From Ascidiella aspersa (lineage: Eukaryota): a DNA stretch of 64,000 bases. Position numbers and translations under genes: made by a program. The stretch covers positions 23,374,001-23,438,000 of the forward strand of contig OZ004609.1 of assembly GCA_963924565.1 (NCBI GenBank), written 5' to 3'. Shown here in pieces: positions 1,150 through 42,300 of this stretch. Numbering within the stretch: position 1 is the stretch's first letter; every line of letters starts with the position of its first letter. A model generated the notes under the pieces. The model saw nothing but the letters and a program-made list of their open reading frames with translations, was not told where the DNA came from and searched no databases.

Positions 1150-1902
1150 GAGTTTCCAAACTTACCTGTCAATTCCTTTCAGCATGGCATTCACAGATTT
1201 AGGATTCAAAGGTTCCATGGTTTATTTCACTAATAAAAAATGTAATGTGTTGTCAAAAAAAGGATATAGACTTTGCTGGTCGTGGAACAGCATTAGAGGG
1301 ATAGTACGCGACAAAAACACATCGATATCAAATCGCTATTATAATGTTTTTTAATGTGATAAATTACATATTGAAATAAAATTAATTTATTAAATTATTT
1401 AAACTGTTTTAGGAAAAATTTCACCAGATTCTTATACTTTAATTATAAAATTTTACATAAAGATATCAAAAATCTAGACGTAGTTGTCGTATCAACAATA
1501 AACTGCTCAACCATGAATAAACGCAACACATGCCAAATTCCAATCTACTATTTAACTTTAACAAAGATATTTAACATATAAAAATTTGGTTGACTTAGGA
1601 CATTATCTGACAATAATCCAAATTTAACTATAATTATTTTCACTACCAGCAATATTATGGCCAATAACACTAAAAGAGAAACATTTTTGTGACAATTTAT
1701 CTGGGGAACCACCTTGTGTGCAACAACGTTGATCAGCCCTGTGTTCACACGGCACTAATTTAGCATAGGTGTGTTTTTTAGTATTAACTACATGCAAGTA
1801 TACAAATAAAACTAGAAAAAAAACTTGTTATCAATTTCACTTACAGTAACCATTTCTTTTCATGGAACTTTACGACGAGATCTCGGCGCGAGGGCGACCA
1901 TG

Positions 1903-2190
1903 TATAGTATACCAGGTTTAAAAGTAAGGCTCGGCCGCGGTCATAGTCGCGCATTTTATGTAAAACCAACGTAAAATGCGGTCAGCGGCGAAAAATTTAA
2001 ACGGACAAAACTTACGGCACGCTAACAGTTTTTAGTATAAGTAGGCTACTCCATTTTTAGCCGTGCAAGTTTTACAAATAATTTTATTACAGCCTCGCAA
2101 ATTTGGGCGGAAATGTTATTACAGCCGCGCAATTTTAAGCTGAAAAATCGTCTCCCCACGCAAAATCCAAAGTTTCCAATCTGGACTATG
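1903..2190. mobile_element. Second copy of the 431-693 MITE family
   Basis: Shared internal sequence (aacgtaaaatgcgg...gcggaaatgt...caaaatccaaagtttccaatctgg). Confidence 0.7.
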
Positions 2191-2210
2191 TAGCCACCAT
2201 GTAGTGACAG

Positions 2211-2690
2211 CCAGGGCTTTGGAGCCGGAGCACCGGAGTCGTGCATTTTAAACGGAGCAGGAGCTCTACGTAAAATTCAAATGGAGCTGAAGCAGGAGCT
2301 GGAGCCAGTTGTTTAAGAAATAGCTCCGGCTCAATGTATTTCATAAGATGCTATGCTATTACTAATGGCTGAAGTTGCATAGTTTAACAGCAAACCTTCA
2401 CAAAATTAAGAATTGTTGCCTCTTTTTGGCGCCACCTTTTCTAACTAACCATTGTGGTGTTTTATTTATTGTGTTATTTTGTTTGTGATTATTTTGAAAC
2501 GCTAGATATTGCAAATTAAGCGTTCATCCTCAAACTACATTTTTGACGTAATGGAGCCGGAGCAGTGGTATTAATAAACTCCGGAGCTGAGCTGGAGCTA
2601 ACCTATGATAAAAGAGAGCTCCGGAGCTTGAGACAGACTACGAGCTGGAGCTAACCTATAATAAAAGAGAGCTCCGGAGCTTGAGCACAA
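2211..2690. mobile_element. Degenerate copy of GGAGCC/GGAGCT-repeat hAT-type MITE
   Basis: Starts CCAGGGCT...GGAGCC and carries clustered ggagct/ggagcc units like the 12399-12875 element. Confidence 0.6.
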
Positions 2691-2828
2691 CTAAACTTAC
2701 TGATTAAGGTGCGCACACAGAATGCAGATTAGACTTGTCACGGTGCTAATTTTCTTTAAATTTATTTAAAATCCTTTGATTTTTTTTAATATTAATATTC
2801 CTTCCAAAATAGTGTAAAACCTTTAATT

Positions 2829-5800
2829 ATGGGAAAATTTAATAAAAACAAGCCTCCTGGGTTAAATTCAGAGCAAATCAATAAAATCTTAAACAATGTC
2901 TTGCCAAATGAAGAAAAACTTTCATCTCCAGTGATAAATAAAAATGACCACTTGCAACCAATAGGCAGAAAACAGAGAAGAAGAAATATTAAAACTGAAA
3001 AAAAGATGAAACGTTTGCTTTATAGCCATTCAAATGCAATAAGTACAACAATTGACACAACAGTTCAAAAAAACAAGAAAGTACGAAAACAACGTGAAAT
3101 GAAAAGGGCCAGTGGAGCCACAAAAAGAAAAAGAAAAAAAGAAAAACAACAGAAAGAGCAGCAAGAAAACATGGTGAAGGAAAATCGCGTTGAAGTCAAA
3201 CAAATCAGTGACCTGGAAAAACTTATGCATATGAACAAAAAGAAAAAGAAAATGGACAAACTTCCAACTGCATTTGTGAATGATGGTTTGGATTATATTC
3301 TGAATGTGATAGACGGCAAAGAAGAAGACCTTGATCTTAGTGAGGAAGATAAATCTTCCTCTGACATAGAAAGTGACGTTAATGAAGGTATGGAATAAAA
3401 ATTATTTTAGTGCGTTCTGTTTTGAAGTCTCAAAGAAATAAGTTATTTTTATATAAAGGCAAAAATATTTTTTATATAAAGGCAAAAAATGTTTAAATTT
3501 TGATCCTAATAATATGCTGTGAAATTTGTATGTGATTAAAATTAATATTGTGAGAAATAAATTTTAAATTTATTAAGGTGGTAGGTAAACTTCCGAAATA
3601 AGCCTAAACATAGCTTTATTAGGCTAAAGTAATAAAGCACCAAACTAACAAGTAGCACCAACTATGTGACTCATTTTAATGTTTTTGTATTACCACAGAT
3701 TATTGTGATGAAAACATGGACACGGAGACTGTGCCAGATAATGTGCACATACAAAGTGAGCAGTCGGATGCCGATGATTTGCATGACCAGTTGTTATCAA
3801 TGGGTGACTCCACCAGTGATATAGTGCATTCATCCGATGAGGATGTAAATTGTGACATAACTGAGTCAACTTTAGATGTTGTTGTTCAGCCTAGTCAGGA
3901 ACTTGGTGACTTAACTCATAAATATGTGCCACCAGCTCAACGCACAGCATTTTTGGCTGCGGAAAAAGATAAACAGCTAAAAATCAAGAGACAGCTTAAA
4001 GGCTCATTAAACAGATTGAGTGAAGCGAATCTTCACAGCATCTGCCAAGACATTGAAAACATATTTCAGTCAAACAGCCGAGCCCATGTGGTGGAATGCC
4101 TGACAGAACTGATGTTGGAGCAGTTTCACACTGCTGATCCCATTCCAGAGAGGTTAATAACAGAATCTGCCATGTTAATGGCAGTTCTGTGTTGCAATAT
4201 TGGCACATCTGTAATAGCTCACTTTATCGAGATTACTGCTATTAAACTGAACGCTTTGTTTGAAAAGGAAAACTATGGCTCAGGAAAAGAATTTAACAAT
4301 CTTTTGCAGCTGCTCTGTAGCCTGTTTCAACTGAAAGCCATACAACCAAAAATACTGTTAGATTTGGTTGAAATCTTGTGTCAAAAGTTTAGTGAAAAAG
4401 ACATGGAACTCCTTGTGCTGACATTAACTGCAATCGGATTTAAATTGAGAAAGGAAAATCCAACAGAGTTAAAACAAGTTGTTGATAATATAACAAAAGC
4501 TGCCCAGAAAACTGTGGTTGATGGGCCCCTATCGAGAACGAACTACCTGCTGGAAGTACTTAATGCAATAAAAAACAACAATGCTAGAAAACTACATGGT
4601 ATGTTAGTGTTACATATTTTATATGCAATATGCCATAGTTTGTGTCAAGTATATACATACACAAGTACCCACATTCTTATATATATAATATGTAAGGTCA
4701 TATATACTCTTTTTATCTCTAATATGTGTCCAATAACAAATGCAACCCATTTTTACCAATTTTTTAGGATATGATGCAGAGACCTGGACAATCAGAAATA
4801 AGAAAATAAAGGCAATGTCAAAAGTGGATTCTGAAGAATTCCCTAACGTTTCTTATCAGGTTAAAATAACCTCAATTTAACTAAAAAAATATATAAAACT
4901 GGTGTAAATTAAATGGCACATATATGTCGCATTTTAGGATTTGCTTTTTGGGGAAAGCAAGGGGAGATGGTGGATTATAGGAAGTGCATGGACGGGCACT
5001 CCAATGTTGCACAGTAGGACAGAAAACAATCCTAAAGGTATATATGTCATATTGATGAAGCAATAAATAAAGAAATACAACACGTGAAAACTTTTAAACA
5101 CTTCTAGATGAGACATTTTCATCTGCTAGTACACAACTGGTTGATATGGCAAGGAAACTAAGGATGAACACAGATGTTAGAAAAAGGATATTTTATGCTG
5201 CCTTGTCATCTGAGGACTATGTTGATGCATTTGGAAACATTTTGAAGCTAAAGTTAAAAGTATCCATTTTTGTGAACTTTTAATTAATTATATTAACTGA
5301 TAAAAACATGTTTTTATTTGTTGAAAACAAAAATATAAACAAAATAATTACATGAGATACTTTCAGGATCCTAAAACAATTTGATATTAACTACAAATTG
5401 TTTATTTTTAGGGCAAGCAACTGCGGGAAGTGAGCTTTGTGTTAGTTGAATGTTGTCAGCAGCAGAAAAAGTTTAACCTTTTTTATTTTCATTTGTTGAA
5501 AAAGCTTTGCCAGCATGACAGGTGAACAGATATTAATATTTTTTTTTAATTTGAAATCAGAAGAAAAGTTGATATGTCACTAATTCACTATTAAGGAAGA
5601 AATAAAGAATGTTACTATGTACCTTTTTTTTGAAAAGAAATGCTGTTGTGAGGATTTCACTAAATATAGGGTTGATATTGAGTTAAAATTTGCACTTGCC
5701 GTTCAGGCGAGTGTCTACCAATCAACACTCGTCTGAAAGAAATACACTCAAAATATTGTCATGCCATCTTAAAATTTTTTGTACTACCTTAATTGTTTTT

Positions 5801-7105
5801 TCCAATGATTTAACCTCCTTTTTTAGTGGGTTTACATAGTTATCGCATAGCATGCCTCTTACAGTTTACTATTAAATAATTCAGACTTTTACCATGTGCA
5901 ATGCACTTGTGGTACTCTGCACTCGCAAGGAGCAAATTGCACTAAACAATTTTTTAATCTCAGCATCTACTTTGTTTACAGCCTAACCTGGGGATTTGCA
6001 GAATTTCTTTAAATTAAAATGTGCATTTAATTAACATAAAGCATGCACAATTGTGCCACACCACTCCCTGTACTTCTTTACAATTTCAGTTTTACAAGGA
6101 CTAATCTTAGGAAAACTAATGACAAGATAGTTTTCTTTTCTTGTAAAGGTAGATCTTGGGGAGTCTCCTAACGAAAAGATATAATAATTCCAAAATTAAT
6201 TCATTCAATGTGATGAGTTCGACATTTAAGCTATTTATGATGCATGTATGTTGTCTTGATACTGCTTTCTACATAGCATTATGTACATTATATCTTGTCA
6301 TTTTGGGTTGCTTTTAAAAAAGTAAAGTTAGCCATTACAATTTTTAACAGGAAGAATTTGGAGCTTTTAAACACTAAACAGTTGTGTGCAATTGTGTGCC
6401 CTTAGTTTATCTGTTGTATTACAGCAGTTTGCAGAGTTGTAAAAAAGGGTGTTACTTTAGCTGATTGAATATGGTAATTTTGTCATTTTTAATGACCTAT
6501 TCCACTGATGCTTACCTGTATGTTATTTATGCAAGCTCAAAAAATATATGCAAACATAAGCCTTATGATTGACTATTGTATTGATATAAGTTGTAATTTT
6601 TTTTTCTAAGATAACATAATACAACAGTTTCTTATAGACAGTTTGTGATGTCTTTGCAATGCTGTTTCTGGGATAGATTTAAACTGTTATCCAGTATGTC
6701 GACTCAACAAACTAATAACGTCACCCAACTTCTTGCTCATCTGGTAGTTTCTGAAGAAGTGCCTTTGTCATGTTTAAAGGTATAGTGCTGTGTATTTTAA
6801 TCTGGTATTATGGCATTTCTTTAAAACTGTTTAAAATTTATCTTTAGGCAATTGAATTTGCAAAAATTGACCCTACCATGGTGACCTTCTTGCGCAATCT
6901 TATCAAAGCAGTGATCGCTGTTTCAACTGATGAACTTGCAACACCTTTCGTAAAACTTGTTTCTAAAAAGAAGGATCTGGTTAACCAAGGACTTCAATTG
7001 TTTATACAACACTTCATGCTTAAAGATACACCATTTATGGAGAACAATCAACATATTAAAGATAGTTTACACATGATAAATGATTGTCTTTCCAAAAGTC
7101 GCTAA
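2829..7105 (+). CDS. NOM1: Nucleolar MIF4G-domain protein 1 (MIF4G + MA3 domains), 8 coding exons: 2829-3387, 3699-4598, 4768-4859, 4938-5037, 5108-5259, 5412-5521, 6638-6779, 6848-7105
   Basis: Lys-rich N-terminus with 'LPTAFVNDGLDYIL' and 'KYVPPAQR...LKGSLNRLSEANL' (MIF4G start). Also 'GRWWIIGSAW', 'ARKLRMNTDVRKRIF...SSEDYVDAF' and 'ECCQQQKKFNLFY', matching the NOM1/Sgd1 family. All GT-AG junctions keep frame. Confidence 0.93.
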
Positions 7106-7194
7106 CCTAAAAACATTGTTCTCTTCTTTTAAGTAACGCTAAAAGATTACTGCCCAAATAATTTTGTCATTAATTTTTTTTAATAGGTTTAATA

Positions 7195-8163
7195 ATGAGT
7201 TTTAGGTTTGATTTTACCCTGGATAAGGAAGATATAAACGAAGATAAAAATGTAACAAAAAAATGTGTTCAGTTGAAAAAAAAGTCTTCGGAAGTTGAAT
7301 TTAAAGTACACACTGTTGAAAAAGCAAAATTATCATGGCAATCAAGCAAACAAGAATTTGTATACACAATAGAAAAAGTTGATTTGGAAAACATAACAGA
7401 AATTTACTATGTGCAACCGCATGGTATCAAACCATCTGAAAAAAAATTGCAATTAAGTTCTGCAAGTCCTCCACCTAAAAAGCAACTTCTTCATATGGAA
7501 ACTGACCTAATACCTACTATATATGAAGGGGGACTAAAAGTCTGGGAATGTGCTGTTGATTTATCAAACTATTTATTCACCATCAAGGAGGCAGTTGTCA
7601 AGGAAAAAAGGGTCCTGGAGCTAGGCTGTGGGATTGGTTTACCTGGAATTTCTGCGCTAAGGAATGGGGCTCTGCATGTTTCATTCCAGGATTTTAACAG
7701 TTTTGTCATCACTAATGCAACAATTCCATCCGTTCTGCTAAATGTATGCTTGAAACAGTGGCCGAATGAATTTACGACTGAAAGTCTGGATGACCCTAAA
7801 ATCATAGAAAAACTATTTGACAAATCTATTTCTGGTGTAGAAAACAGAATTAGCTTTTTAAGTGGTGACTGGCGAGATTTTCCAAACATGGTTAACACAA
7901 AGTTTGATGTCGTTATCTCTGCAGAAACAATATACTGTCTTGAATATTACGAAAGGCTGCATAAAACTTTGGAACATGTTTTACATGAAGACGGTGCTGC
8001 ATATATTGCCAGTAAGGCCTTTTACTTTGGTGTTGGTGGAGGAGTACATCTTTGGGAAGAGTTTGTCAAGAAACAACAAGTCTTTACCGTGGAATATGTT
8101 AAAACTATTGAGGCACCATTGAAAAGGGAAATCTTAAAAATGACGTTCAAATCTTCAATATAG
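7195..8163 (+). CDS. METTL18: Histidine protein methyltransferase 1 homolog (RPL3 His methyltransferase, Hpm1-like), intronless, 322 aa
   Basis: N-terminal MSFRFDF, 'DLIPTIYEGGLKVWECAVDL', SAM motif I 'VLELGCGIGLPG', 'FQDFN', 'SGDW', 'FDVVISAETIY' and 'ASKAFYFGVGGG' are diagnostic of METTL18. Confidence 0.93.
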   Translation: MSFRFDFTLDKEDINEDKNVTKKCVQLKKKSSEVEFKVHTVEKAKLSWQSSKQEFVYTIEKVDLENITEIYYVQPHGIKPSEKKLQLSSASPPPKKQLLHMETDLIPTIYEGGLKVWECAVDLSNYLFTIKEAVVKEKRVLELGCGIGLPGISALRNGALHVSFQDFNSFVITNATIPSVLLNVCLKQWPNEFTTESLDDPKIIEKLFDKSISGVENRISFLSGDWRDFPNMVNTKFDVVISAETIYCLEYYERLHKTLEHVLHEDGAAYIASKAFYFGVGGGVHLWEEFVKKQQVFTVEYVKTIEAPLKREILKMTFKSSI

Positions 8164-12951: not shown

Positions 12952-13815
12952 CTATGACAGCAGTTGAATTAGCTCTTTGCAACGCCCTAACTTTATAGTT
13001 TGATGGTGGGAAAGGTCACTATTAGTTTCACAAGACACAAAAAAATTTTCTGCATCAGACACAGTTTTCGTTCTTGCAGTGCCCTTTAAATTTTGTAAAT
13101 AATATAACAGAGTTTTGAATGTATCATCAGGAACCAAGTTTTCATCAAACATATTCTGCAGCAGCCAAACCTGTCGAACCTTTTTAAAGGCCCAGTTTTC
13201 GCGATTCGTTTGCCATTTCGTCAAATATTGAATGGCAAGTTCTTGTGCTGATGTTTTATCTTCAGAAGTAACAACTCCTTCAACTGATTTAGAATTTTTG
13301 TCCTTTTTATTTTCGACTATATCTTCTATAGCAACAGGTTTAACTCTTTTCATCTTCTTTGCCTTCTTTTTATCTTTATTTGTTACCTCCTGTTGGATTT
13401 CTGTAGAATCAGCATTGGTAGAAAGCGGCATGTCATGCTTTAATTGCACTGCTTCCTTTAATAGCATTGATTCAAAAGCACCAGGATCAGGTGCTGGAAG
13501 TGGAGGAAGCTTCTTCTTACGCTTTTTCTTTCTTTTCACAGGAACTTCCGGAGTTTCTTCCTGTGCATTTTCTTTTTGTGACACATTATCCTTATTATCC
13601 TCTGCAAGGTTGTCACAACCTTTGTCGGTAAATAGTTTTTTAACTTTATTTGGTGATGCTTCAGCGACTGTGACATTTTTTCGCTTCTTCTTTAAAACAG
13701 TTTTTTCTTCTTTTTTTAGTTTTTTGGTTTTACTAGATTTATTGTTTTCCACAGACTCTAAAAGTTCATCATCCACCGAAAGCTTCTTTTTATTCTTTTT
13801 AACTTCAATAGCCAT
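12952..13815 (-). CDS. C7orf50: C7orf50-like WKF-domain protein (yeast Rbp95/Ycr016w family), intronless; likely start MAIEVKK at 13815
   Basis: Lys-rich basic N-terminus. The C-terminal 'QYLTKW...NWAFKKVRQVWLLQNMFD...VPDDTFKTLLYYLQNLKGTAR' matches the WKF domain. The ORF-track start at 13854 lies in a polypyrimidine tract upstream of an AG at 13833-13832. Confidence 0.85.
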   Translation of the reverse strand: MAIEVKKNKKKLSVDDELLESVENNKSSKTKKLKKEEKTVLKKKRKNVTVAEASPNKVKKLFTDKGCDNLAEDNKDNVSQKENAQEETPEVPVKRKKKRKKKLPPLPAPDPGAFESMLLKEAVQLKHDMPLSTNADSTEIQQEVTNKDKKKAKKMKRVKPVAIEDIVENKKDKNSKSVEGVVTSEDKTSAQELAIQYLTKWQTNRENWAFKKVRQVWLLQNMFDENLVPDDTFKTLLYYLQNLKGTARTKTVSDAENFFVSCETNSDLSHHQTIKLGRCKELIQLLS

Positions 13816-13959
13816 TGTTAAGCTTTTTATGCTAGTATTAAAAAGGAAAAACAATTTAGATAAACATCAAATAGGATCATAAAAAAATGGAATTTAGTTA
13901 AACATAAGTTACAGAAATAAGTTCTTACATGCAAACCAATCATGCATTAAGTTAAAAAA

Positions 13960-14796
13960 TTATAAAGTGGACCACTTTGTGTGTATATCACTTTCAGGTT
14001 TAAGAACTGTTTTGTCCGCTAGATTTACTATCCATCCAGGGGAAAGTCCATAAAAAATTTGCCTGGGGTCTTTTCTGTGATTAGGCCACAACTTTTCGGG
14101 GTTCAAATCAGGTAGGGTGTATCCATATTTGGAGGCTAGTTTTGCACGTTCACTTACTACCTCTTCTGGGTTGGCTAAATAGCCTCTGACTTTTGGATCT
14201 GTATAGTAGGTGACAAGTTCTGTTGGTGGCAGTTGTCTTTTGTGAATTGGATTACCCTTCAAAAAGTACTTCACTGGGTTACAAAGAGCAGAAAAGCTTA
14301 AGCGATCATAAAATGATGTGGTCACAACCCCCCCGTGTTTCTCTACACTGGCAATTGCCAATTCACTTGCAATCTGAACCTCAATGTTGATTTTTTCTTG
14401 AAAAATGTTTGATCCCTGATCAACCAGAAAAATTCCATAATAATTATCATCTCTAAATTTTACAGCTCTGCAGTTCATGAGTGTTGTTAGATCAATTGAT
14501 TGTGAAGGGTCAATCCTTCCAAGATCAATTAGGTGTTGTATGCTCCACAAACTAACTGGGAGATATTGGCGTTTCAAGTCTTCATCTCGATTAAATCCAT
14601 ATTTGGGGATCCGGTTTTGAAATTTGTTAAGAAGATTTTTGCCCAAGGGGTGCTTTGTCCCTTTAGCTTTTGTATGTTTACCATGCTGTCCTCTGCGGTT
14701 TGCTTTCTTTCTGTAAGCACCAGGATTTGCCTTAATATTGAAAACAGAAACCCTTGGCAGTTTTCTTAGCAACTCAAAATATTTACTTTCAGACAT
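13960..14796 (-). CDS. MRPL15: Mitochondrial ribosomal protein L15 (uL15m), intronless, 278 aa
   Basis: 'LLRKLPRVS', 'RIPKYGFN', 'LIDLGRIDPSQSIDLT', 'INIEVQIASELAIASVEKHGGVVTT', 'YYTDPKVRGYLA' and 'RKDPRQIFYGLSPGWIVNLADK' match MRPL15. Confidence 0.95.
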   Translation of the reverse strand: MSESKYFELLRKLPRVSVFNIKANPGAYRKKANRRGQHGKHTKAKGTKHPLGKNLLNKFQNRIPKYGFNRDEDLKRQYLPVSLWSIQHLIDLGRIDPSQSIDLTTLMNCRAVKFRDDNYYGIFLVDQGSNIFQEKINIEVQIASELAIASVEKHGGVVTTSFYDRLSFSALCNPVKYFLKGNPIHKRQLPPTELVTYYTDPKVRGYLANPEEVVSERAKLASKYGYTLPDLNPEKLWPNHRKDPRQIFYGLSPGWIVNLADKTVLKPESDIHTKWSTL

Positions 14797-32954: not shown

Positions 32955-35900
32955 TCAAACATATTTCCGGTGCACAATTGTAGCTCCATGCTCCTGAAAC
33001 TCTTCTCTGGTAATCCAGCGAAAACGTGACGTACTCAGTGACGTCATACGTCCAGCTCCTCTCCAAATTGCGTACTGACGTTTTGGAAAGACATTTATCG
33101 TGAGGTGCTTCTCTTTGTTAGGCATCAGTTTAACGAGCTCGCTCTAAATAAGGCCATGTATATTTTGAGGTATTAAGGTAACGTCTTTCGGGCGGAGTGC
33201 ATGGCTAAAGTCCACAAGTCAGAACACAAGCCCCGGTTCATTTAGTTACAGGCACACCTTAGGCGCTTTAATCCTATATTATTTTATTTGATCATGACTT
33301 TGTTTGCTTATTTTATTAGCTATTCTAACATTATGGTAAATCACGCAAAGCTTTTTGAAAGTTGTAAAATTTAAGACAAAATAAGGAGAAGGACGAGTAG
33401 GTATTTCAAAAATGTCAAAATTTTGCATTTTACATATGTTTTAAACCCCAAACTTAAGTAGTTTACCTTTAGTCTCTCGGGTAGACCTGGCAGTAGTGAT
33501 GCGCCACCGACAATGACAATGTTTTTGCATATCTCATCAATGACGGTATCATTGTTCTGTTCGTTTCGACATGCTCGAATGCTTTCGGCGCAGATGTGGT
33601 GTAGGCCCATGTCACTATCCGATTCCACTATAAAAAGCAAAACCTTTTATGTGTGACTACATCATAAGATAAAAAGCACCACTACGGTAATCTACATTCT
33701 ACAACGAGGTACAATAAACTAATAAAAAGTTATACTGTTTTGCTCCGAGCTTTTTATATAAATGGAGAAAATTTATAAGTCACCAAGTATTTTCAATTTG
33801 AAAATACAAATATGTACTGTAAGTTTGTCAGCGGATTAAAGCCGTGCTGTATTCTTCAACGAAGTTTATCAGCCATTGCTCAGTTAAGCTGAGTCGTAAA
33901 AAAGTTTTTTTAATGGAAAGTGTGCCCTAATAAAGTTACGATAACAAAAGATGCATAAAGCTTACTGTGAACACGCAAATGGCAAATCTGTTTCTGCTAA
34001 AAATCGTGCCTTTGCAATACAAATAAACCTGGGATTCAAACCGATCCCGAACCGGAGTTTTGTAGACCGGCATTGGCTTAGTTTTACCCGAACCATAGCC
34101 GAACCTGAAACGTCTTTTTTTTTTAAAAAGGGTGTCAAACCGAAACTGAACAGAATATATTGGGGTCATTCGAACCTTTACCGATCCCGAAACGGCGAAA
34201 ACAGCGGTTCACTTCAGCATGACGTCATGATACAATTGATATATGTATATAATTATGACGCATCTAAATATTTTGTCACCAGTCCATCAATGTATATTGC
34301 ATAGTATGGTGAAGTGTACTAAATCGCAACAAAATTCATAAATGATTGACTGATTCAGTTGGTCTGTTAAAGAATTACGGTCTACTGAATAACGTACAAT
34401 TGTTTAATTCATTTTTATCATGCTTTTAATTCTGGGGTATTATGAGATGATAAAGGTACAGGACGTAGAAAGATCATTCGCGGAAAGCGCGAAAAAGAGA
34501 CGGCGGGCCGGATTAATTACATTGGTGGGCCCAATCTGGCCCATGGGCCGTAGGTTTCCGACCCCTAGTATAAACCAATATTTTAATTAAAATGTCGTTC
34601 CTTAATTTCTTCAAAGGTTGAAAAAAATAGGGGGCCATTGATTTCTCAAAATTTTTGAAGGAGGGCACGGTGTAAAAAAGGTTGGGAACCCCTGATTTAA
34701 ATAAAACGGCGATTTTTTATGCTCTGAAGTAACCGCCCCTTTCAAATTTATATTAATTTGTCTCCTGATGGCGATATAATAATCGTACCTTAAGTAAAAC
34801 TTGTGTTTTGGTGAAGTACTAAGAGATTATTTTGCACAAAATACAAAAAATTACTGTAAAAACATATTTATTTCATTTCTACGAAATATTATATGGTCCT
34901 TACCACAAAGCGTCCCGCGTTGTAAGTATACACAGTGTGACGTCATTCAATACGCATGTCGCTGGCTGATGCGCAATCACAAAACAAGAAAAGTTTGTCT
35001 CCCGCGGTTACAATAGACGCCCAGTTTACCAAGAGCAAATGTTGCTCATTTGTTCTGGCGTCCTTTGCATCTCTGAACCGACAAACACCCGTGCCAATGT
35101 TGACCTAATATTGAAACTAATCTCGGTCGAAATCGCCCGTCACCAAAGTGTTCAAACAAATGGCTTCAAACGAGACGGAGGAGTTTAGACGCCTGGAAGT
35201 TATTCGTTTACTTCGATTGCGGAAAGTTCGACTGGTATTTTTAAAGTTGGCTTTAGCCAATATGTTAGTTTTGTTTGAAACTTACAATTGATATATATTC
35301 GCATAGGTTTTAGGCGAAACCTTAAGAATAACCTTCTAGTGTAATTTATTTCCTTTATATGTCAAATCGTTGCAGAGTGTTCATATTTAGAAAATTTGAC
35401 GCGGTAAAAAAACAACATACAAATTTTTGTTGTGTGACAATAGATATGCGGATGTTAAATGAAAATGGGTTGTGGTAATTTCATCCAGTAGTCTCTGATA
35501 AATTTATCCAGTAAATAAATTTAAATTTTGTAAATGACCCAAAATGACCTGTTTGTGGCAGTAGCCTACATGGACTCCTTTTACTTAAAGTTTACGGGAT
35601 TTGTTCAGAAAAGAACTCCATTGAAAAGTAAAACTTACCGCTTCCGGGATTAGGATGAAAGAGGATCTCAGGCGCTAGGAATCTCTCTTTGTCCACTCTC
35701 ACCGGAGTGCCGCTGGGAAGAGAGTAGGTGCGTTTCCGGTTCATTGCACCCATCATGTCGTCACTATCGCCCACCGTGACGTAACACAGCTTCTCCATCA
35801 TCGCTTTCGGAATATCAACTTCTGAAACGCCTTGAAATAAAGTAACACCATCAGCGAGATGTCGCAATTTACTAAAGCGATCATGACAAACTTTGAAATG

Positions 35901-38053
35901 CGGTATCCGCTCTTATACGTTTATCTATCTATAGTTTAATATTTTGACAAACTTATTTACTGATACTAAAATAAAATGTTTGGTTTTTGGTTGTAAACCA
36001 GCGAAGTAACGTCAACCACGGTTTCGTAAACCAAAAACGAACGAAAACTTCCACTTCAGAATTTCTAATTTTTATTTCTAGTGAAAAGTAAAATTGTGAG
36101 TCTAAAATCTTGCTCTTACCGTTATGGTGTTTTACTCCTCTGTTTTGGACTTTCCGAATAAGTGACTTTAATCTGGCGGTTATATCCGAGCCACCAACTG
36201 CCATTTGTCGTATTCCTTCGGCAACCACACTTCCTGCGGGAAAATCGAATAATAAAGTACACTACAGGGTTGTAATGACTCAATGACAATGTCTTGACTT
36301 GACTTGAAGTTATTCGGCCAAATTACTTGACTTAAGTATTTCGGGAAAATGGCGTGACTCGGACTTTTTCTTAATTTTTGGCGAAATTTGATTATTATAG
36401 CAAACTATCTGCTTGTAAATTAGATTGCTCGCTTTATATTACTTTTTGTTGTTTATCAATTTAGGTAATAGAACATTTTATTTTAATGTTAATAACTTAT
36501 TTTTATGTTAAAAAAAACTTGTGCTTGACCTGCTATGACAGTGCTTACTATTTTTGCAAATTACTTAAGTCGTTTTGAAACATATTATTTATACTTTACG
36601 ACACTGATACACTATGTCTCATTTGTTATCGTGTTGTGGTTATGAGCAATTCGTTTGGCAAATATTTAGTTTTACCGTAAACAATACAAATATTTCTAAA
36701 TGCTTTACTGAAGTTAACAAAACAACCTTTTAATTCAACCCACCTTGAACAACAGGAGAGCAACTCGTTATGTCGTGCCCGATGCTGATAACTAACCCGG
36801 TGGTGATACTGAAGCCGTGTAGTGCCATTGGAGCGCTGCTGCCCAAATACAACTGTTGAACGCCCAGTTTCTCAAACATCAGCTTATTACAGAACATAAC
36901 AAAGTTAAAAATAAATCCAAGCCGGAAAAAATCAAATAAAAAACAGCGCTTAAAACACGACTTCGGTATACTCAAAAAACAAAAACATATATTTGTTTAT
37001 GTATTCAAATTGCGCGGTAAAACAGTCTATAAAATGAAAAACATCTACCTTGACGACATTTTCCCGTGATTCCCGCGACGCTACGGGTGATATCGGCATC
37101 ACGACCTTGGCTTCCTCCGGTTCGACCTTGAGTTCCATGATGAGGATATGTTTGACGATGTGAAGCCAATCTTCCCAGTCCTGGACTTCCCCTTTCTGAA
37201 CTGGATGCTGAAAATATTAGTGTTGTAAACGCATTGACGTTACTTCAGGCAAAGGCTTGTGATGTCAGTCAGAACAAGTACCAGAGAATGTAATACACGT
37301 TTTGTTGATATAAATTTCGCTAAAAATATTGCTTTGCCACTTTTGAATTATTTTCACTCATGTAATGAAAATATTGTTTTCAAGTACACCATACGCACAG
37401 GCGTATTTTTTAGTCCCTGAAATAAATTGTTCATGACTTTCAACTTCCGGTAAAATGCGTTTTACTGATAGTTATTGTGTAACACGATGTAATTAATTAT
37501 GAGTTGAGACTCACCGAAAAGGAAAGGACATCACTTCGCAGCTTAGCATCGTGTCCCACAAAAACGGTATCCATGGAGACTCCGAGTAGGGCGTCCTCGC
37601 TTCGAGGCCGCCCGACTACAGTTGGCATGACAACAGAGGGAGTGTCCTCTTGCGGGAATCCCCCTTTGCACACCCCGCTTCCGATATTGATGACAACCGT
37701 GTTGCCATCGCTCATGGCGTCTAACATGGCAAGGTGGCTGCTGGTGCGAGACGAATTCAATTCGGTATCTAAAATTACAAAGTTGTGGTCAAAACACAAT
37801 AAACTAAGTTTCAGATTTATGGTTAGCCGAAAATGACCTAAATAAGTTGAAGTTAAAGTTGTTATAAAAAAACAACATTACCTACAGCGGTATGGACTGT
37901 GTACTATTTTATTTCCCTTAAGTTGAACTAAATTAGATATAAACCAGTGACTTGACTTGATATTAATTTATGTTGGGAATGTTTCGGAAAAAATCTTGAG
38001 TTTGGTAATTTATAAATAAGTTATGTTGAGAAAAATGGTTGATAAGTTGAATT

Positions 38054-38084
<31 letters not shown>

Positions 38085-39324
38085 ATGGCCCTGAACTGGG
38101 AGTTTACACGCTTTTCTCTATGCATTTTGGACACTTTACAATGCCACGTTTACATCACTGCCAGTCCAATTCAAGCAACACCTGCTGGGGTAGAGTCTTC
38201 AGGATCGACGTGGAAAATGTTGCCGTGACTCGCGCTAAGACTTCTGCTCAGTTCGCGAAGTGCATTGTTCAGCTTGGCCTGTGTATCGTCGGATGCCCTG
38301 TCGAAAATAAAGAACCGCAAAGATCGTTTATCAATAGAACAGAACAGTGTTATACTTTTTAAGTGCCATACAATTAAAAATACGTTTAGCCAAACATGCA
38401 ACACTAATAAGACAAAAAGGGAACATCATAAGAATGTTTAGTTTTCTAAAAATCAGAGCTCCAAAACTGGAGGACGCAACTCTGTTGTCGCGAGAAGTTT
38501 GAGGGTCGCATAGGCCTACATTTATTTTTATAAAAGGTGTCACATTTATATAAGTTGTGCTTTTTTACTTTTGTTTTAAAAAAAAAAAACGATTTAAAAC
38601 TCTGCAATTTGAAACAAATGAAACACTTATTTCAACTACAAAAAGTAGCATAAAAGACAACCCCAAAAGTTTAACGTTTTTTCAGCACATGCATGGAACA
38701 TAGCAAACAACTAAAAATATTTGCTTTCAAATGTTAGTAAATAAAAAGGGGTCACAAATTAGGAAGGTATAAGCTCTGCTATAAATAATATGTTTTGCTG
38801 TTATTTCTAGATAAACAGGACAATAAAGGAGTGATGGAGCTCAAAACTCGTAGCAATTAATTCACTTCAACCCACTTTCCCTCTCCTCTGATTCCGAGCG
38901 CCGACGACCTCCCGTCCAGCTCATCCTCCTGCTTCTGACGCCAGCGCATCATCAGCGGTGACGTAGGCACACTGAGTGATGTCAGACGGTGTGACGTTGC
39001 GGGCAGTCTCTTGGCGTGAGCCCGTCTCAACAAAGTCACTTCAGGGCTAACTTTAGCGTCGTCACTGCTGTTGTCGCTATTCTCAAGGATTGGAGTGCTG
39101 AAACCGCCAGCTTCGGGTAAGTTTCGCAGGATTTCCGGGGGCGACCCAACATCCGATAAGTTTTCCGCGTTATTTTCGAGTAACTTTCCGCTTTTGAGAG
39201 TCAGCAAACTCAGCTGGTCATTGCTCGCGTTGTTTGTCACCGCCGACTTGGGCTGGTTTGTCGAAGGGAAAAGACCCTGTTTTGACACCGGTTCCGCAAC
39301 TTCGACGCTGGCCGAACAACCCAT
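32955..39324 (-). CDS. Divergent actin-like protein with ~210-aa N-terminal extension beginning MGCSAS; 9 exons: 39324-38876, 38297-38182, 37768-37515, 37207-37049, 36882-36744, 36233-36120, 35830-35639, 33627-33467, 33143-32955 (~590 aa)
   Basis: Exons 3-9 align colinearly to actin: 'VVINIGSGVCKGGF...PSVVMPTVVGRPR', 'HPVQKGEVQDWED', 'LMFEKLGV', 'TTGLVISIGHDIT', 'EKLCYV', 'YSLPSG...ERFLAPEILFHP', 'NIVIVGGASLLPGLPERL', 'RQYAIWRG...SLST...WITREEFQEHGATIVHRKYV*'. Exons 1-2-3 join with compatible intron phases (2, then 1). The exon-2 donor (CAG|GTGTTG) is weak. Confidence 0.82.
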
Positions 39325-42300
39325 TTTTAGCCTTCTTAGGCTGGTCGTAACTTATTGAGCTATGTTCATATACGGTTGGTTACTTCTAAAGTTAAAATTA
39401 TTTTTTTTACCAAAGTCAGATATTGTGTTATATTTGATAAGCACACTTTCCTGAGCCATTTCTTAAGCAATAATCTTATTTTTTGGTGTAGGCTATTCCG
39501 AACTTATCTTGCTCTGTGTAAGCTTTATACCGACTATCGAAGGTAATGCCGACATATGCTACTATAATATTCAACAATATTATTCATTTAACTACACTTG
39601 AGTAAAATACAGGTATATAGGGAGTTCCTAAGTCTGTTTTTAAAATAATCTTTGTTGCATCGTCCAGTTGTTTAAGTGTGTTTTCGAAGCGTTTAACATT
39701 GTCAGCTGATTTTGCAGTGATAACATCGAACCATCGAAAGAAAATACGCATGTAAACATCTTTCGTCTAACATCAAAAGCCAGAGACGCGCCACCGAACT
39801 GGTGAGGCCAATATCTGCTTGCACATCGCTCGGTTGAGTATTGACCGGTCCTTATTCACTGTGTCGCCTGGTGATTCTTTTCGCTGACCAAACAAACCAC
39901 AACCATTGACCCTTTCACTAGCTTAAATCTGGCCCTGAGAGACCGAGTTGGCAAGTCGAAACGTGCAAGGCGCAGCCGACGCGAACAAAGTCGTTTACGA
40001 GCCGATTATTTGTTACCTGCTCCATTGAGCTCGCGTTCGCGGTCGGTCTCTAAAGTTCATCCAAGTATATAACATCGCACCGATAAAAGCTTTTCAATAT
40101 TTTACGGTTCTTTTGACTGGTTGCCGAGATTTGTTGCTCATGACAAAACTAGTGCAATCTTCGGATGGCGCACAGTTAAGTATTGTTTTTTTTAAATATT
40201 GCATTAGTTTGTTATATGGTATTTTTTTTAATATCGCGTTAGCTGTTTTCAGCAAATTCTTGCAATCTTGAGTCGTAAAGTAGAACATTTGCAATAAAGG
40301 TCTCACAGAAAATATAATAAATGGCCTGTTGCTTTCACCACTCTGAACTACTCTGAAAGAGTGTAATGTACGAGACGCTTGCAAATTTAAACTATTAACT
40401 GTTGCCAATTTGAAATCGTAGTAACTACTTTCAAAAACTAAAGGCCGAGTGCTTGCTTAAATAAATTAAATTATTGCCCTCCTAGTTGAACTGCTGCTTC
40501 CCTCACTTGAACTGTCGTCTTAAGGATCCACTCTGATCAACATACCTTGGCGTGTGCTCCTTATTTTCATCGGTTATTTGCTTTGGGGCGGTTTGGCTGT
40601 CGACGGTGCATATAATCGACATTATACAGTGAATTACGAGGCTTAATCATTGACCATACCGCTCTCTCTTACCTTTTCATTTCGCCGTCGGTGTCCGACG
40701 CGTTACCATGACACAACTTTACGACCCCCTTCTATAAATAGCCCGACCATATATTTTGAAATTGCTCCGCATGACAAACCGCCAGTATCGATGTGGAATG
40801 CTTTGTCCCATGCTATGACTAAGTTTATGCGAGTTGAATATTGGAAAATTAATTTCGCCTAAATTTATGACATAGTTTGTCAGTAAGTAAACATTCATTA
40901 ATATTGTTGTCATACCATAGCACAAGCAATAGTTTACAATAGTACATATGGAGGCCAGTTTGACGAACTTTCCCGTCAGTTGCGGGTTACAATAAATTAA
41001 AAAAAAAATAAGTTGCATTTAACTGAATCAGTATTTTTTCTGATAATGGGAGGGAAGGGGTCATGTACAAGACATTAAGCCGTGGCGACGATATTGCTAT
41101 TAAAACAAGAAATCGCCTTTCCATGAGCAAATGGGGTGATTTACAATTTACCTGACAAAAATGAGCAAATATTAAAGCGTTCGTTGAAGATCACACAAAA
41201 ACCATTTCTGTGATTTTTAGCTAGGCTGCTTGTTTAATGTTCATTTATTAAACTAACGTTTTCCATTTTTTCTATCGTTCGGGGCGTATTGTGAAGTTAC
41301 TGTATGGGTGCAACAGTGCAGTTTGAGAAACACTGTAGTATATAACGCTGGGAATTTGTTTAAATGATGTTGGTTTAATAATGTACATGACAAAAATAAG
41401 TTGAAATATCTACCACAGTCATCGACATTGGGGATTATTTATTTGGTTTGGGCTAACAAATATAGGAAAATTGACCTAATTTTATTTCACGAAAAATCGG
41501 CATTAAACACCTTTTTCACTCGAGTTATTTTGTAATATTGTGGTGTTTTGTTTAGATTTTTTGGCAAATATCGACAAAATAAATACTATATGACACCATG
41601 CGTGAATAGTCTTTTTCAGAACAATGGCTTCATATTTTGACAAAATATTTTTTTGTCTGGGTGTTAACAGCCCTGAACGAAAGTGTTACCTTAACAACAA
41701 GCTTTCAAAGATGTCTAACGTCTTCGATTTAAAGTTGTTTTCAGGTAAACAAATGCTACTTGCGTAAGATTGTCATATTCGCCAATTTGATGGACCAGGA
41801 GTCCTCAACCTTTTTTTCTTTCGTTGCACAACAATTCTGTGGGTCAATATTTTTTTATGAAAAAAAAAAACAGTAACATAGGTTAGAATAAAAAAAGAAA
41901 ACATATTTCAAAACAGGTATTTATTCAACCGTGCATTAATGAAAAACATGCTAATGAACAATAAAAAGCCGTTATTCCTGTAAAACTAAGTATAGTGACA
42001 CAAATGAAACTAAATTCGGTTTATCAGGCTTTACTAAATTGTTCTATGGCACACCTCAAAATGTTTCCATGGCCCACTGGGTGAGAACCGCTGGACCAGA
42101 CGATGTAAACTTTAAGTTGTTCAGCAGAACTGTGAATAATTAAAAAAAGGATAAACAATGTTTTCACCAAGTGTTTTACCTCACCGATATGTCTTCGTGA
42201 CAGCGACGAGCCAACCAGCAACTGATGCGCATCGCAAGGCAAAAGATTATTTCTGAACAGACGCGCGAAAGCCGACAAACCAGCAAACGTGCTACGACGA

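Follow-up and report, generated by a model that had tools for sequence, protein, structure and literature searches.

A candidate lipid-anchored actin-like protein with a long N-terminal extension, predicted from a locus of the ascidian Ascidiella aspersa

Arp53D of Drosophila, a testis-enriched non-canonical actin-related protein (Arp), has an N-terminal extension that directs its localisation (PMC8291977). The N-terminal domain of Arp7A (ACTL7A) binds LIM2-3 of its partner Tes (PMC3064208). In addition, actin-like proteins (ALPs) of the trypanosomatid flagellum are monomeric actin-fold subunits of the single-headed inner dynein arms, where they are non-filamentous and ATP-bound (PMC12637542). 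Here, a putative gene was examined in a 64,000-nucleotide stretch of A. aspersa DNA (GenBank assembly GCA_963924565.1, contig OZ004609.1, positions 23,374,001 to 23,438,000), which is referred to below as the window and within which all positions are numbered. The gene model runs on the minus strand from 39324 to 32955 and predicts a protein of about 590 residues, in which a lipid-anchored tether would precede a diverged actin fold. We give this explanation as a whole, with nine exons forming one gene, about an even chance of being correct. In the literature, no paper was found on a lipid-anchored actin or Arp, on an actin-like protein that joins myristoylation with an N-terminal extension, or on an N-myristoylated actin-like flagellar protein.

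The nine exons are joined by eight junctions, all of which are GT-AG, and sum to 1773 nt, corresponding to 590 codons followed by a TGA. The splice junctions and the start codon are predictions from the DNA. Exon 1 (38876..39324; all exons are on the minus strand) begins at the ATG at 39324 with MGCSAS, comprises 149 codons plus 2 nt, encodes mostly disordered sequence and ends at the donor AAA/GTGGGT, where the slash marks the exon boundary; its translation begins MGCSASVEVAEP. Exon 2 (38182..38297) is 116 nt long, follows the acceptor ...TTTTCGACAG/G and encodes ASDDTQAKLNN...PEDSTPA (the translation begins ASDDTQAKLNNAL). It ends at the weak donor CAG/GTGTTG, and reading through this donor leads to a stop codon, TGA, at 38173-38171. 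Both junctions that connect the 5' exons to the remainder, 38876>38297 and 38182>37768, are GT-AG and in frame. Skipping of exon 2 breaks the frame, and its 116 nt are needed to reach that of the actin part. Exon 3 (37515..37768) opens with 13 tether-like codons, which are followed by two methionine codons (Met 37728 and Met 37716), the actin N-terminus, the phosphate-1 loop (INIGSGVCK) and a full-length D-loop. An earlier note on this DNA had proposed that exons 1 and 2 splice in frame onto a complete actin fold to give about 590 residues, and this layout is borne out at the sequence level by the length of 1773 nt, the GT-AG junctions and the collinear Pfam matches.

Exons 3 to 9 encode a complete, collinear and strongly diverged actin fold. 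The Pfam family Actin (PF00022) was matched by six of the seven exon pieces (3, 4, 5, 7, 8 and 9), in order, across profile positions 5-408 and with 26-37 bits each. Furthermore, all seven pieces are collinear with residues 6-375 of a conventional actin of the same genome (L002:283-1413), to which 118 of 339 residues (35%) are identical. The match of exon 3 (2.9e-08) covers profile positions 5-52, and 24 of its 63 residues are identical to residues 6-68 of the own-genome actin in an ungapped alignment that includes the D-loop. Exon 4 (37049..37207) corresponds to actin subdomains 2/1 and was aligned to actin residues 71-125 (4e-06, profile 63-114). Exon 5 (36744..36882) contains the Q137 region and the phosphate-2 loop, both of which are altered (Q137S, and DSGDGVTH changed to SIGHDITS), and still matches the family (2.4e-06). 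The very divergent exon 6 (36120..36233), the equivalent of subdomain 4, has no Pfam match; 5 of 19 residues are identical to actin 177-195, and the exon was placed by collinearity and phase. Exon 7 (35639..35830) matches profile positions 231-287 (4.9e-07). Exon 8 (33467..33627) carries the GG(A)S adenine-pocket loop, preceded by a 5-residue insertion relative to actin, and matches positions 302-346 (1.4e-06). The last exon, exon 9 (32955..33143), encodes the actin C-terminus (...IVHRKYV) and ends with the TGA at 32957-32955; it matches profile positions 348-408 (1.6e-09), with 24 of 58 residues identical to actin 318-375. The seven exons are open, collinear and correctly phased at only 35% identity, with no stop codon or frameshift, which argues for selection. 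A second in-frame acceptor was seen 9 nt downstream of the start of exon 7 (start at 35821; TTTCAAG/GC versus GTTTCAG/AA), and if both acceptors were used, one actin-fold loop would be three residues shorter in one isoform than in the other.

The product of exons 3 to 9 is not a conventional actin, with only 35% identity to the own-genome actin L002; between L002 and another actin gene of the genome, L003, the identity is 70-95%. When exon pieces were compared with solved structures in the PDB, the best 60 matches of exon 3 and of exon 9 were all actins, and ordinary actins were also the best matches of exon 7, with Arp1 appearing only at ranks 11-13. In this exon-by-exon comparison, none of the canonical Arp classes (Arp1 to Arp11) outscored actin. 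The top two PDB matches of exon 5 were trypanosomatid ALPs, which are light chains of the inner dynein arms (9e5c_6j and 9y6s_6u). A search of the 308.6 Mb genome with two exon pieces detected no close paralogue, the nearest sequences being ordinary actins with 34-43% identity. A protein search with exon 3 returned no fragment-sized relative, but the length window of that search shut out full-length proteins, so this blank says little. L003, located 240 kb away on the same contig, was considered as a relative of the actin-like gene and rejected, as it encodes an ordinary actin and contains introns. On another contig, a stretch of about 100 kb (G000:C7:22148952-22244515) holds a cluster of at least eight open reading frames (ORFs) for full-length actins of 382-410 aa, all without introns; L002, which is of the conventional cytoplasmic type, is among them.

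In the alignment to the own-genome actin, several residues at the nucleotide site are replaced (D11N, N12I, Q137S, D154S, D157H, G158D, H161S and K336Q), and G301/G302 are retained. Since the residues with which actin holds ATP-Mg and carries out hydrolysis are among those replaced, this fold is most likely unable to polymerise as an ATPase. The earlier note had suggested that the protein could seed, cap or anchor filaments. The replacement of D11, Q137, D154, D157, G158 and H161, together with a subdomain 4 equivalent (exon 6) that is barely recognisable, makes such a role less likely, and a monomeric, non-polymerising adaptor would fit better.

Several lines of evidence were obtained for the coding nature of the two 5' exons. 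The GC content of exons 1 and 2 is 0.54-0.55, compared with about 0.3 in the introns, and exon 2 (0.54) stands out from its flanking introns (0.22-0.33). Exon 2 is open solely in the frame set by the phase of exon 1, whereas each of the other two frames contains 2 stop codons. Codon usage was then scored with preferences learnt from exons 3 to 9 only, which left exon 1 outside the training set. Exon 1 scored 0.47 bits/codon in the frame of the model, its two alternative frames giving 0.08 and 0.22, and exon 2 scored 0.49 bits/codon and likewise beat its own other frames. Only 2 of 2000 composition-matched shuffles equalled the score of exon 1, and 28 of 2000 that of exon 2. With a total of 75.9 bits, exon 1 is the top-scoring coding stretch in the 32 to 47 kb region of the minus strand. 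The ATG at 39324 is the first of its open frame, has the context AAAATGG and is preceded by an in-frame TAA 30 nt upstream. By composition and codon usage, exons 1 and 2 are coding.

The predicted extension spans about 206 residues before the equivalent of the actin methionine and is rich in Ser (15%), Leu (13%), Asn (7%) and Pro (6%), with only 4 aromatic residues in 203. A single-sequence AlphaFold2 (AF2) model of exon 1 gave a mean predicted local distance difference test (pLDDT) value of 54.5, most of the chain being low-confidence coil and residues 123-143 alone forming a confident helix. The composition and the low pLDDT of exon 1 agree with the earlier description of a disordered Ser/Pro/Asn-rich tether of about 210 residues. 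The motifs of the RxxS and S/T-P kinds that had been pointed out are also present (RLTS, RELS, RSLS, RTSS and five S/T-P sites). The phospho-regulation that was proposed from them is weakened as an argument, since short motifs of this kind are expected in any Ser-rich region. At the N-terminus, MGCSASV fits the myristoylation pattern G-{EDRKHPFYW}-x(2)-[STAGCN]-{P} with a Cys at position 3, as had been claimed, and an MGC start occurs in only 1 of the 66 ATG-started ORFs of the window. If the protein is joined and begins at Met 39324, the MGCxxS sequence would lead one to expect, as is standard for SH4-type anchors, that Gly2 is N-myristoylated and Cys3 palmitoylated. The further claim that conventional actins and Arps have no such anchor was upheld in canonical actins and in the solved Arps that matched the exons, in none of which was such a start found. 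Searches with the tether returned nothing above noise in the PDB, Pfam and the ESM Atlas, and no paralogue of exon 1 was found in the 308.6 Mb genome.

Several observations weigh against a single lipid-anchored protein. First, an exhaustive phmmer search of 1.84 billion representative proteins with exon 1 detected no true homologue; the sole match, a 2108-aa bacterial repeat protein aligned through 17 short stretches, was rejected as spurious. Second, when X4, the one RNA run of this species, was mapped to 33460-39459 together with three DNA-type runs, no X4 read fell on an exon, about 6% of the run, of unspecified tissue, having been read. Third, no donor of the gene is weaker than that of exon 2, GTGTTG, which is followed by a TGA 11 nt later. 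Fourth, Met 37728 and Met 37716 lie exactly at the start position of a stand-alone actin. Fifth, the AGs that lie between the ATG and the TAA upstream of it would leave room for a preceding coding exon, in which case the Gly would be internal. Finally, the polymorphism of exon 1 is near the level of the introns, with 3 listed single-nucleotide polymorphisms (SNPs) in 449 nt. The variants of this exon are N82S, S76T and an in-frame 3-nt deletion in an acidic run, and 3-nt indels occur in intron 1 as well. Over the whole gene, the listed SNPs, although the list is incomplete, number 3.8/kb in exons and 7.7/kb outside them, that is, about half as many in exons. Such a pattern is in keeping with a constrained fold that bears a disordered tail under weak constraint.

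The most probable alternative is the presence of two genes, which we regard as unlikely but not remote. One gene would encode an orphan MGC protein of about 192 residues ending at the TGA at 38171, and the other an actin-like protein that begins at Met 37728 or 37716, has about 384-388 residues and is expressed from a separate promoter or, through the acceptor at 37769, as the downstream cistron in a spliced leader (SL) operon. The weak donor of exon 2 with its nearby stop suits such a division, as does the canonical actin N-terminal length that either Met gives. In addition, a GC content of about 0.44 persists roughly 80 nt past the exon 2 donor, and one AATAAA lies within the gap at 37913-37908. 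The group to which A. aspersa belongs has SL trans-splicing, and in Ciona operons the trans-splice acceptor directly adjoins the poly(A) site of the upstream gene (PMC1488885). Operon-like same-strand junctions are present in this genome, too: two were found in the window, at 7103-7197 (+) and 13813-13962 (-), with stop-to-ATG distances of 89 and 144 nt, respectively. Both are of the operon type, having a pyrimidine-rich AG acceptor 9-17 nt before the ATG and an A/T-rich leader, and match SL-resolved operons of ascidians.

In contrast to these junctions, the distance from the TGA at 38171 to Met 37728 is 442 nt. The gap between exons 2 and 3 is 413 nt long, and the other introns of the gene range from 166 to 2011 nt. 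No AATAAA-type hexamer occurs in the sequence 10-35 nt before the AG at 37770/37769, and the single AATAAA lies 140 nt off, at an expected frequency of about one per 400 AT-rich bases. Neither the abutting poly(A) site nor the short stop-to-ATG distance of an operon pair is therefore apparent in the sequence of this gap. The 40 nt that precede Met 37728 in exon 3 have a GC content of 54% and are Ser/Thr-rich like the tether, thus resembling coding sequence and not a leader. If the two parts were separate, the stop-free, in-frame continuity of exon 2 with exon 3 would have to arise by chance, at roughly 1/3 for the phase multiplied by about 0.5 for the 13 open codons. Moreover, introns greatly outnumber operon junctions in ascidian genomes. 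Arguments from poly(A) hexamers and from donor strength are indecisive in AT-rich introns. Taken together, these features make it rather probable that exons 1 and 2 and the actin exons constitute a single gene.

Another alternative retains one gene but denies that MGC is the mature N-terminus: an upstream exon would join the AG at 39336/39335 or 39333/39332, or another start would be used, and no lipid anchor would be formed. We consider this quite improbable. Besides the two AGs between the upstream TAA and the ATG, a GC- and CpG-rich island at 39650..40110 (no strand assigned) speaks for it. This island lies 330-790 nt upstream of the ATG, has a GC content of 0.46-0.53, is single copy in the genome and contains a donor-like ATGGAGCAG/GTAACA. 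It includes no ORF longer than 40 aa and matched no Rfam family, and it is possibly a promoter or a non-coding leader exon. On the other hand, no coding-like stretch was found within 7.5 kb upstream, the best score being 12.7 bits compared with 75.9 for exon 1, and a small MEQ frame would enter exon 1 out of frame. The strong context of the ATG and its position as the first of the open frame also count against an upstream coding exon. Furthermore, the AG about 10 nt before the ATG resembles the acceptors of the two operon-type junctions of the window, and MGC would then be encoded at the first ATG of a trans-spliced mRNA.

The least probable alternative, to which we give very little credence, is that the locus is an unexpressed, recently dead duplicate of an actin with coincidental open frames as 5' exons, which would agree with the lack of X4 reads on the exons, the lack of detected homologues or paralogues and the lost catalytic residues, but which conflicts with the selection argued for by the seven open, phased GT-AG actin exons, with the halved SNP density in exons, the in-frame indel of exon 1 and the codon bias of exons 1 and 2, while the small portion of a single RNA run that was read reduces the weight of the missing transcripts.

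The X4 reads that did map to the locus landed only on a repeat at 34460-34860 inside intron 7. These reads come from other copies of the repeat, because all of them continue into unlike sequence. The repeat is of high copy number, its summed contig depth being 1600-3900 as against about 46-116 elsewhere in two DNA runs. A further run, X3, which contained 0.24 of the words, was considered as a transcriptome and rejected, since its contigs cover introns, as expected of low-depth DNA. Near the repeat, at about 34040-34180, sequences resembling the T-arm of a tRNA were noticed (GGTTCGAATG.. and GGTTTGAATCC); ARAGORN and Rfam returned nothing there.

If a single gene is assumed, the following explanation may be proposed. 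Splicing of exons 1 and 2 to exon 3 would provide the actin fold with an extension of about 206 residues, mostly disordered and with one or two short helices. Gly2 would be myristoylated during translation and Cys3 would subsequently be palmitoylated, so that the N-terminus would be held on a membrane. An actin fold that does not undergo ATPase-driven polymerisation might then act as a monomeric, membrane-tethered, actin-shaped adaptor, either recruiting actin-binding partners or working within a complex. Its localisation would be set by the N-terminal extension, as in other lineage-specific non-canonical Arps. The presence of two methionines exactly at the usual start of actin points to a later addition of the 5' exons to an ordinary actin-type gene. 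In its fullest form, the proposal is a myristoylated and palmitoylated member of the actin family, a non-ATPase module on a flexible and possibly phosphorylated tether of about 200 residues, which would have originated in a single lineage of tunicates through the capture of 5' exons by a duplicated actin gene; this version is tentative, and we think it less likely than not.

If the parts are joined and acylated, the protein would be the first known member of the actin family with a direct lipid attachment to a membrane. It would also provide a clean natural case of exon gain adding a new targeting module to an old fold, and would make it testable whether an actin-shaped surface lacking ATPase activity organises actin-binding proteins at a membrane. 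If two genes are present instead, the locus would merely add one more lineage-specific divergent actin beside an orphan small protein.

Among the known systems, the trypanosomatid ALPs 9e5c_6j and 9y6s_6u resemble the predicted protein in exon 5, where the YLG(S/T)S and G-x-D-x-T changes at Q137 and the phosphate-2 loop are common to both; one trypanosomatid ALP, of 678 aa, likewise has an actin fold that begins about 200 residues in. The ALPs differ in that they outscore actins for exon 5 only, by about 3 bits, whereas exons 3, 7 and 9 best match actins. Because this margin of about 3 bits concerns a 46-residue piece, the exon 5 match is taken as resemblance and not as kinship, and no evidence was seen in these comparisons for common descent of the gene with the ALPs beyond the actin family. 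Q137 replaced by Ser and G158 (phosphate-2 loop) replaced by Asp were found in the gene as well as in the ALPs, and may be a recurrent solution in actin folds that do not polymerise.

The actin-derived, divergent and mostly testis-specific proteins ACTL7A/Arp7A, ACTL7B and ACTRT1-3 are similar in kind. To our knowledge, however, they are set apart by being intronless, with extensions that do not exceed about 65 residues and without an acylation motif. The earlier note had regarded the locus as the best candidate for an undescribed system, which was overstated: Arps with a localising N-terminal extension are known, namely Arp53D (PMC8291977) and ACTL7A (PMC3064208). Arp53D shares with the predicted protein a divergent, actin-derived fold and restriction to one lineage, but its extension has 40 residues with no lipid signal reported, compared with about 206 residues encoded by separate exons and beginning with MGCxxS in A. 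aspersa; orthology between the two is not expected. The fold described here is likewise actin-derived, divergent and lineage-restricted, being nearest to actins (35%), present in single copy and without a close paralogue. It is plausible, but unproven, that the predicted product is a non-canonical Arp restricted to one lineage, with an N-terminal targeting extension whose lipid anchorage may be novel.

In Src-family kinases, G-alpha-i and the flagellar calflagins, the classical myristoyl-plus-palmitoyl membrane anchor consists of an initial MGC and a small residue at position 6. The predicted protein has both of these features in common with such SH4-type, dually acylated proteins and would differ from them in its cargo, which is predicted to be an actin fold.

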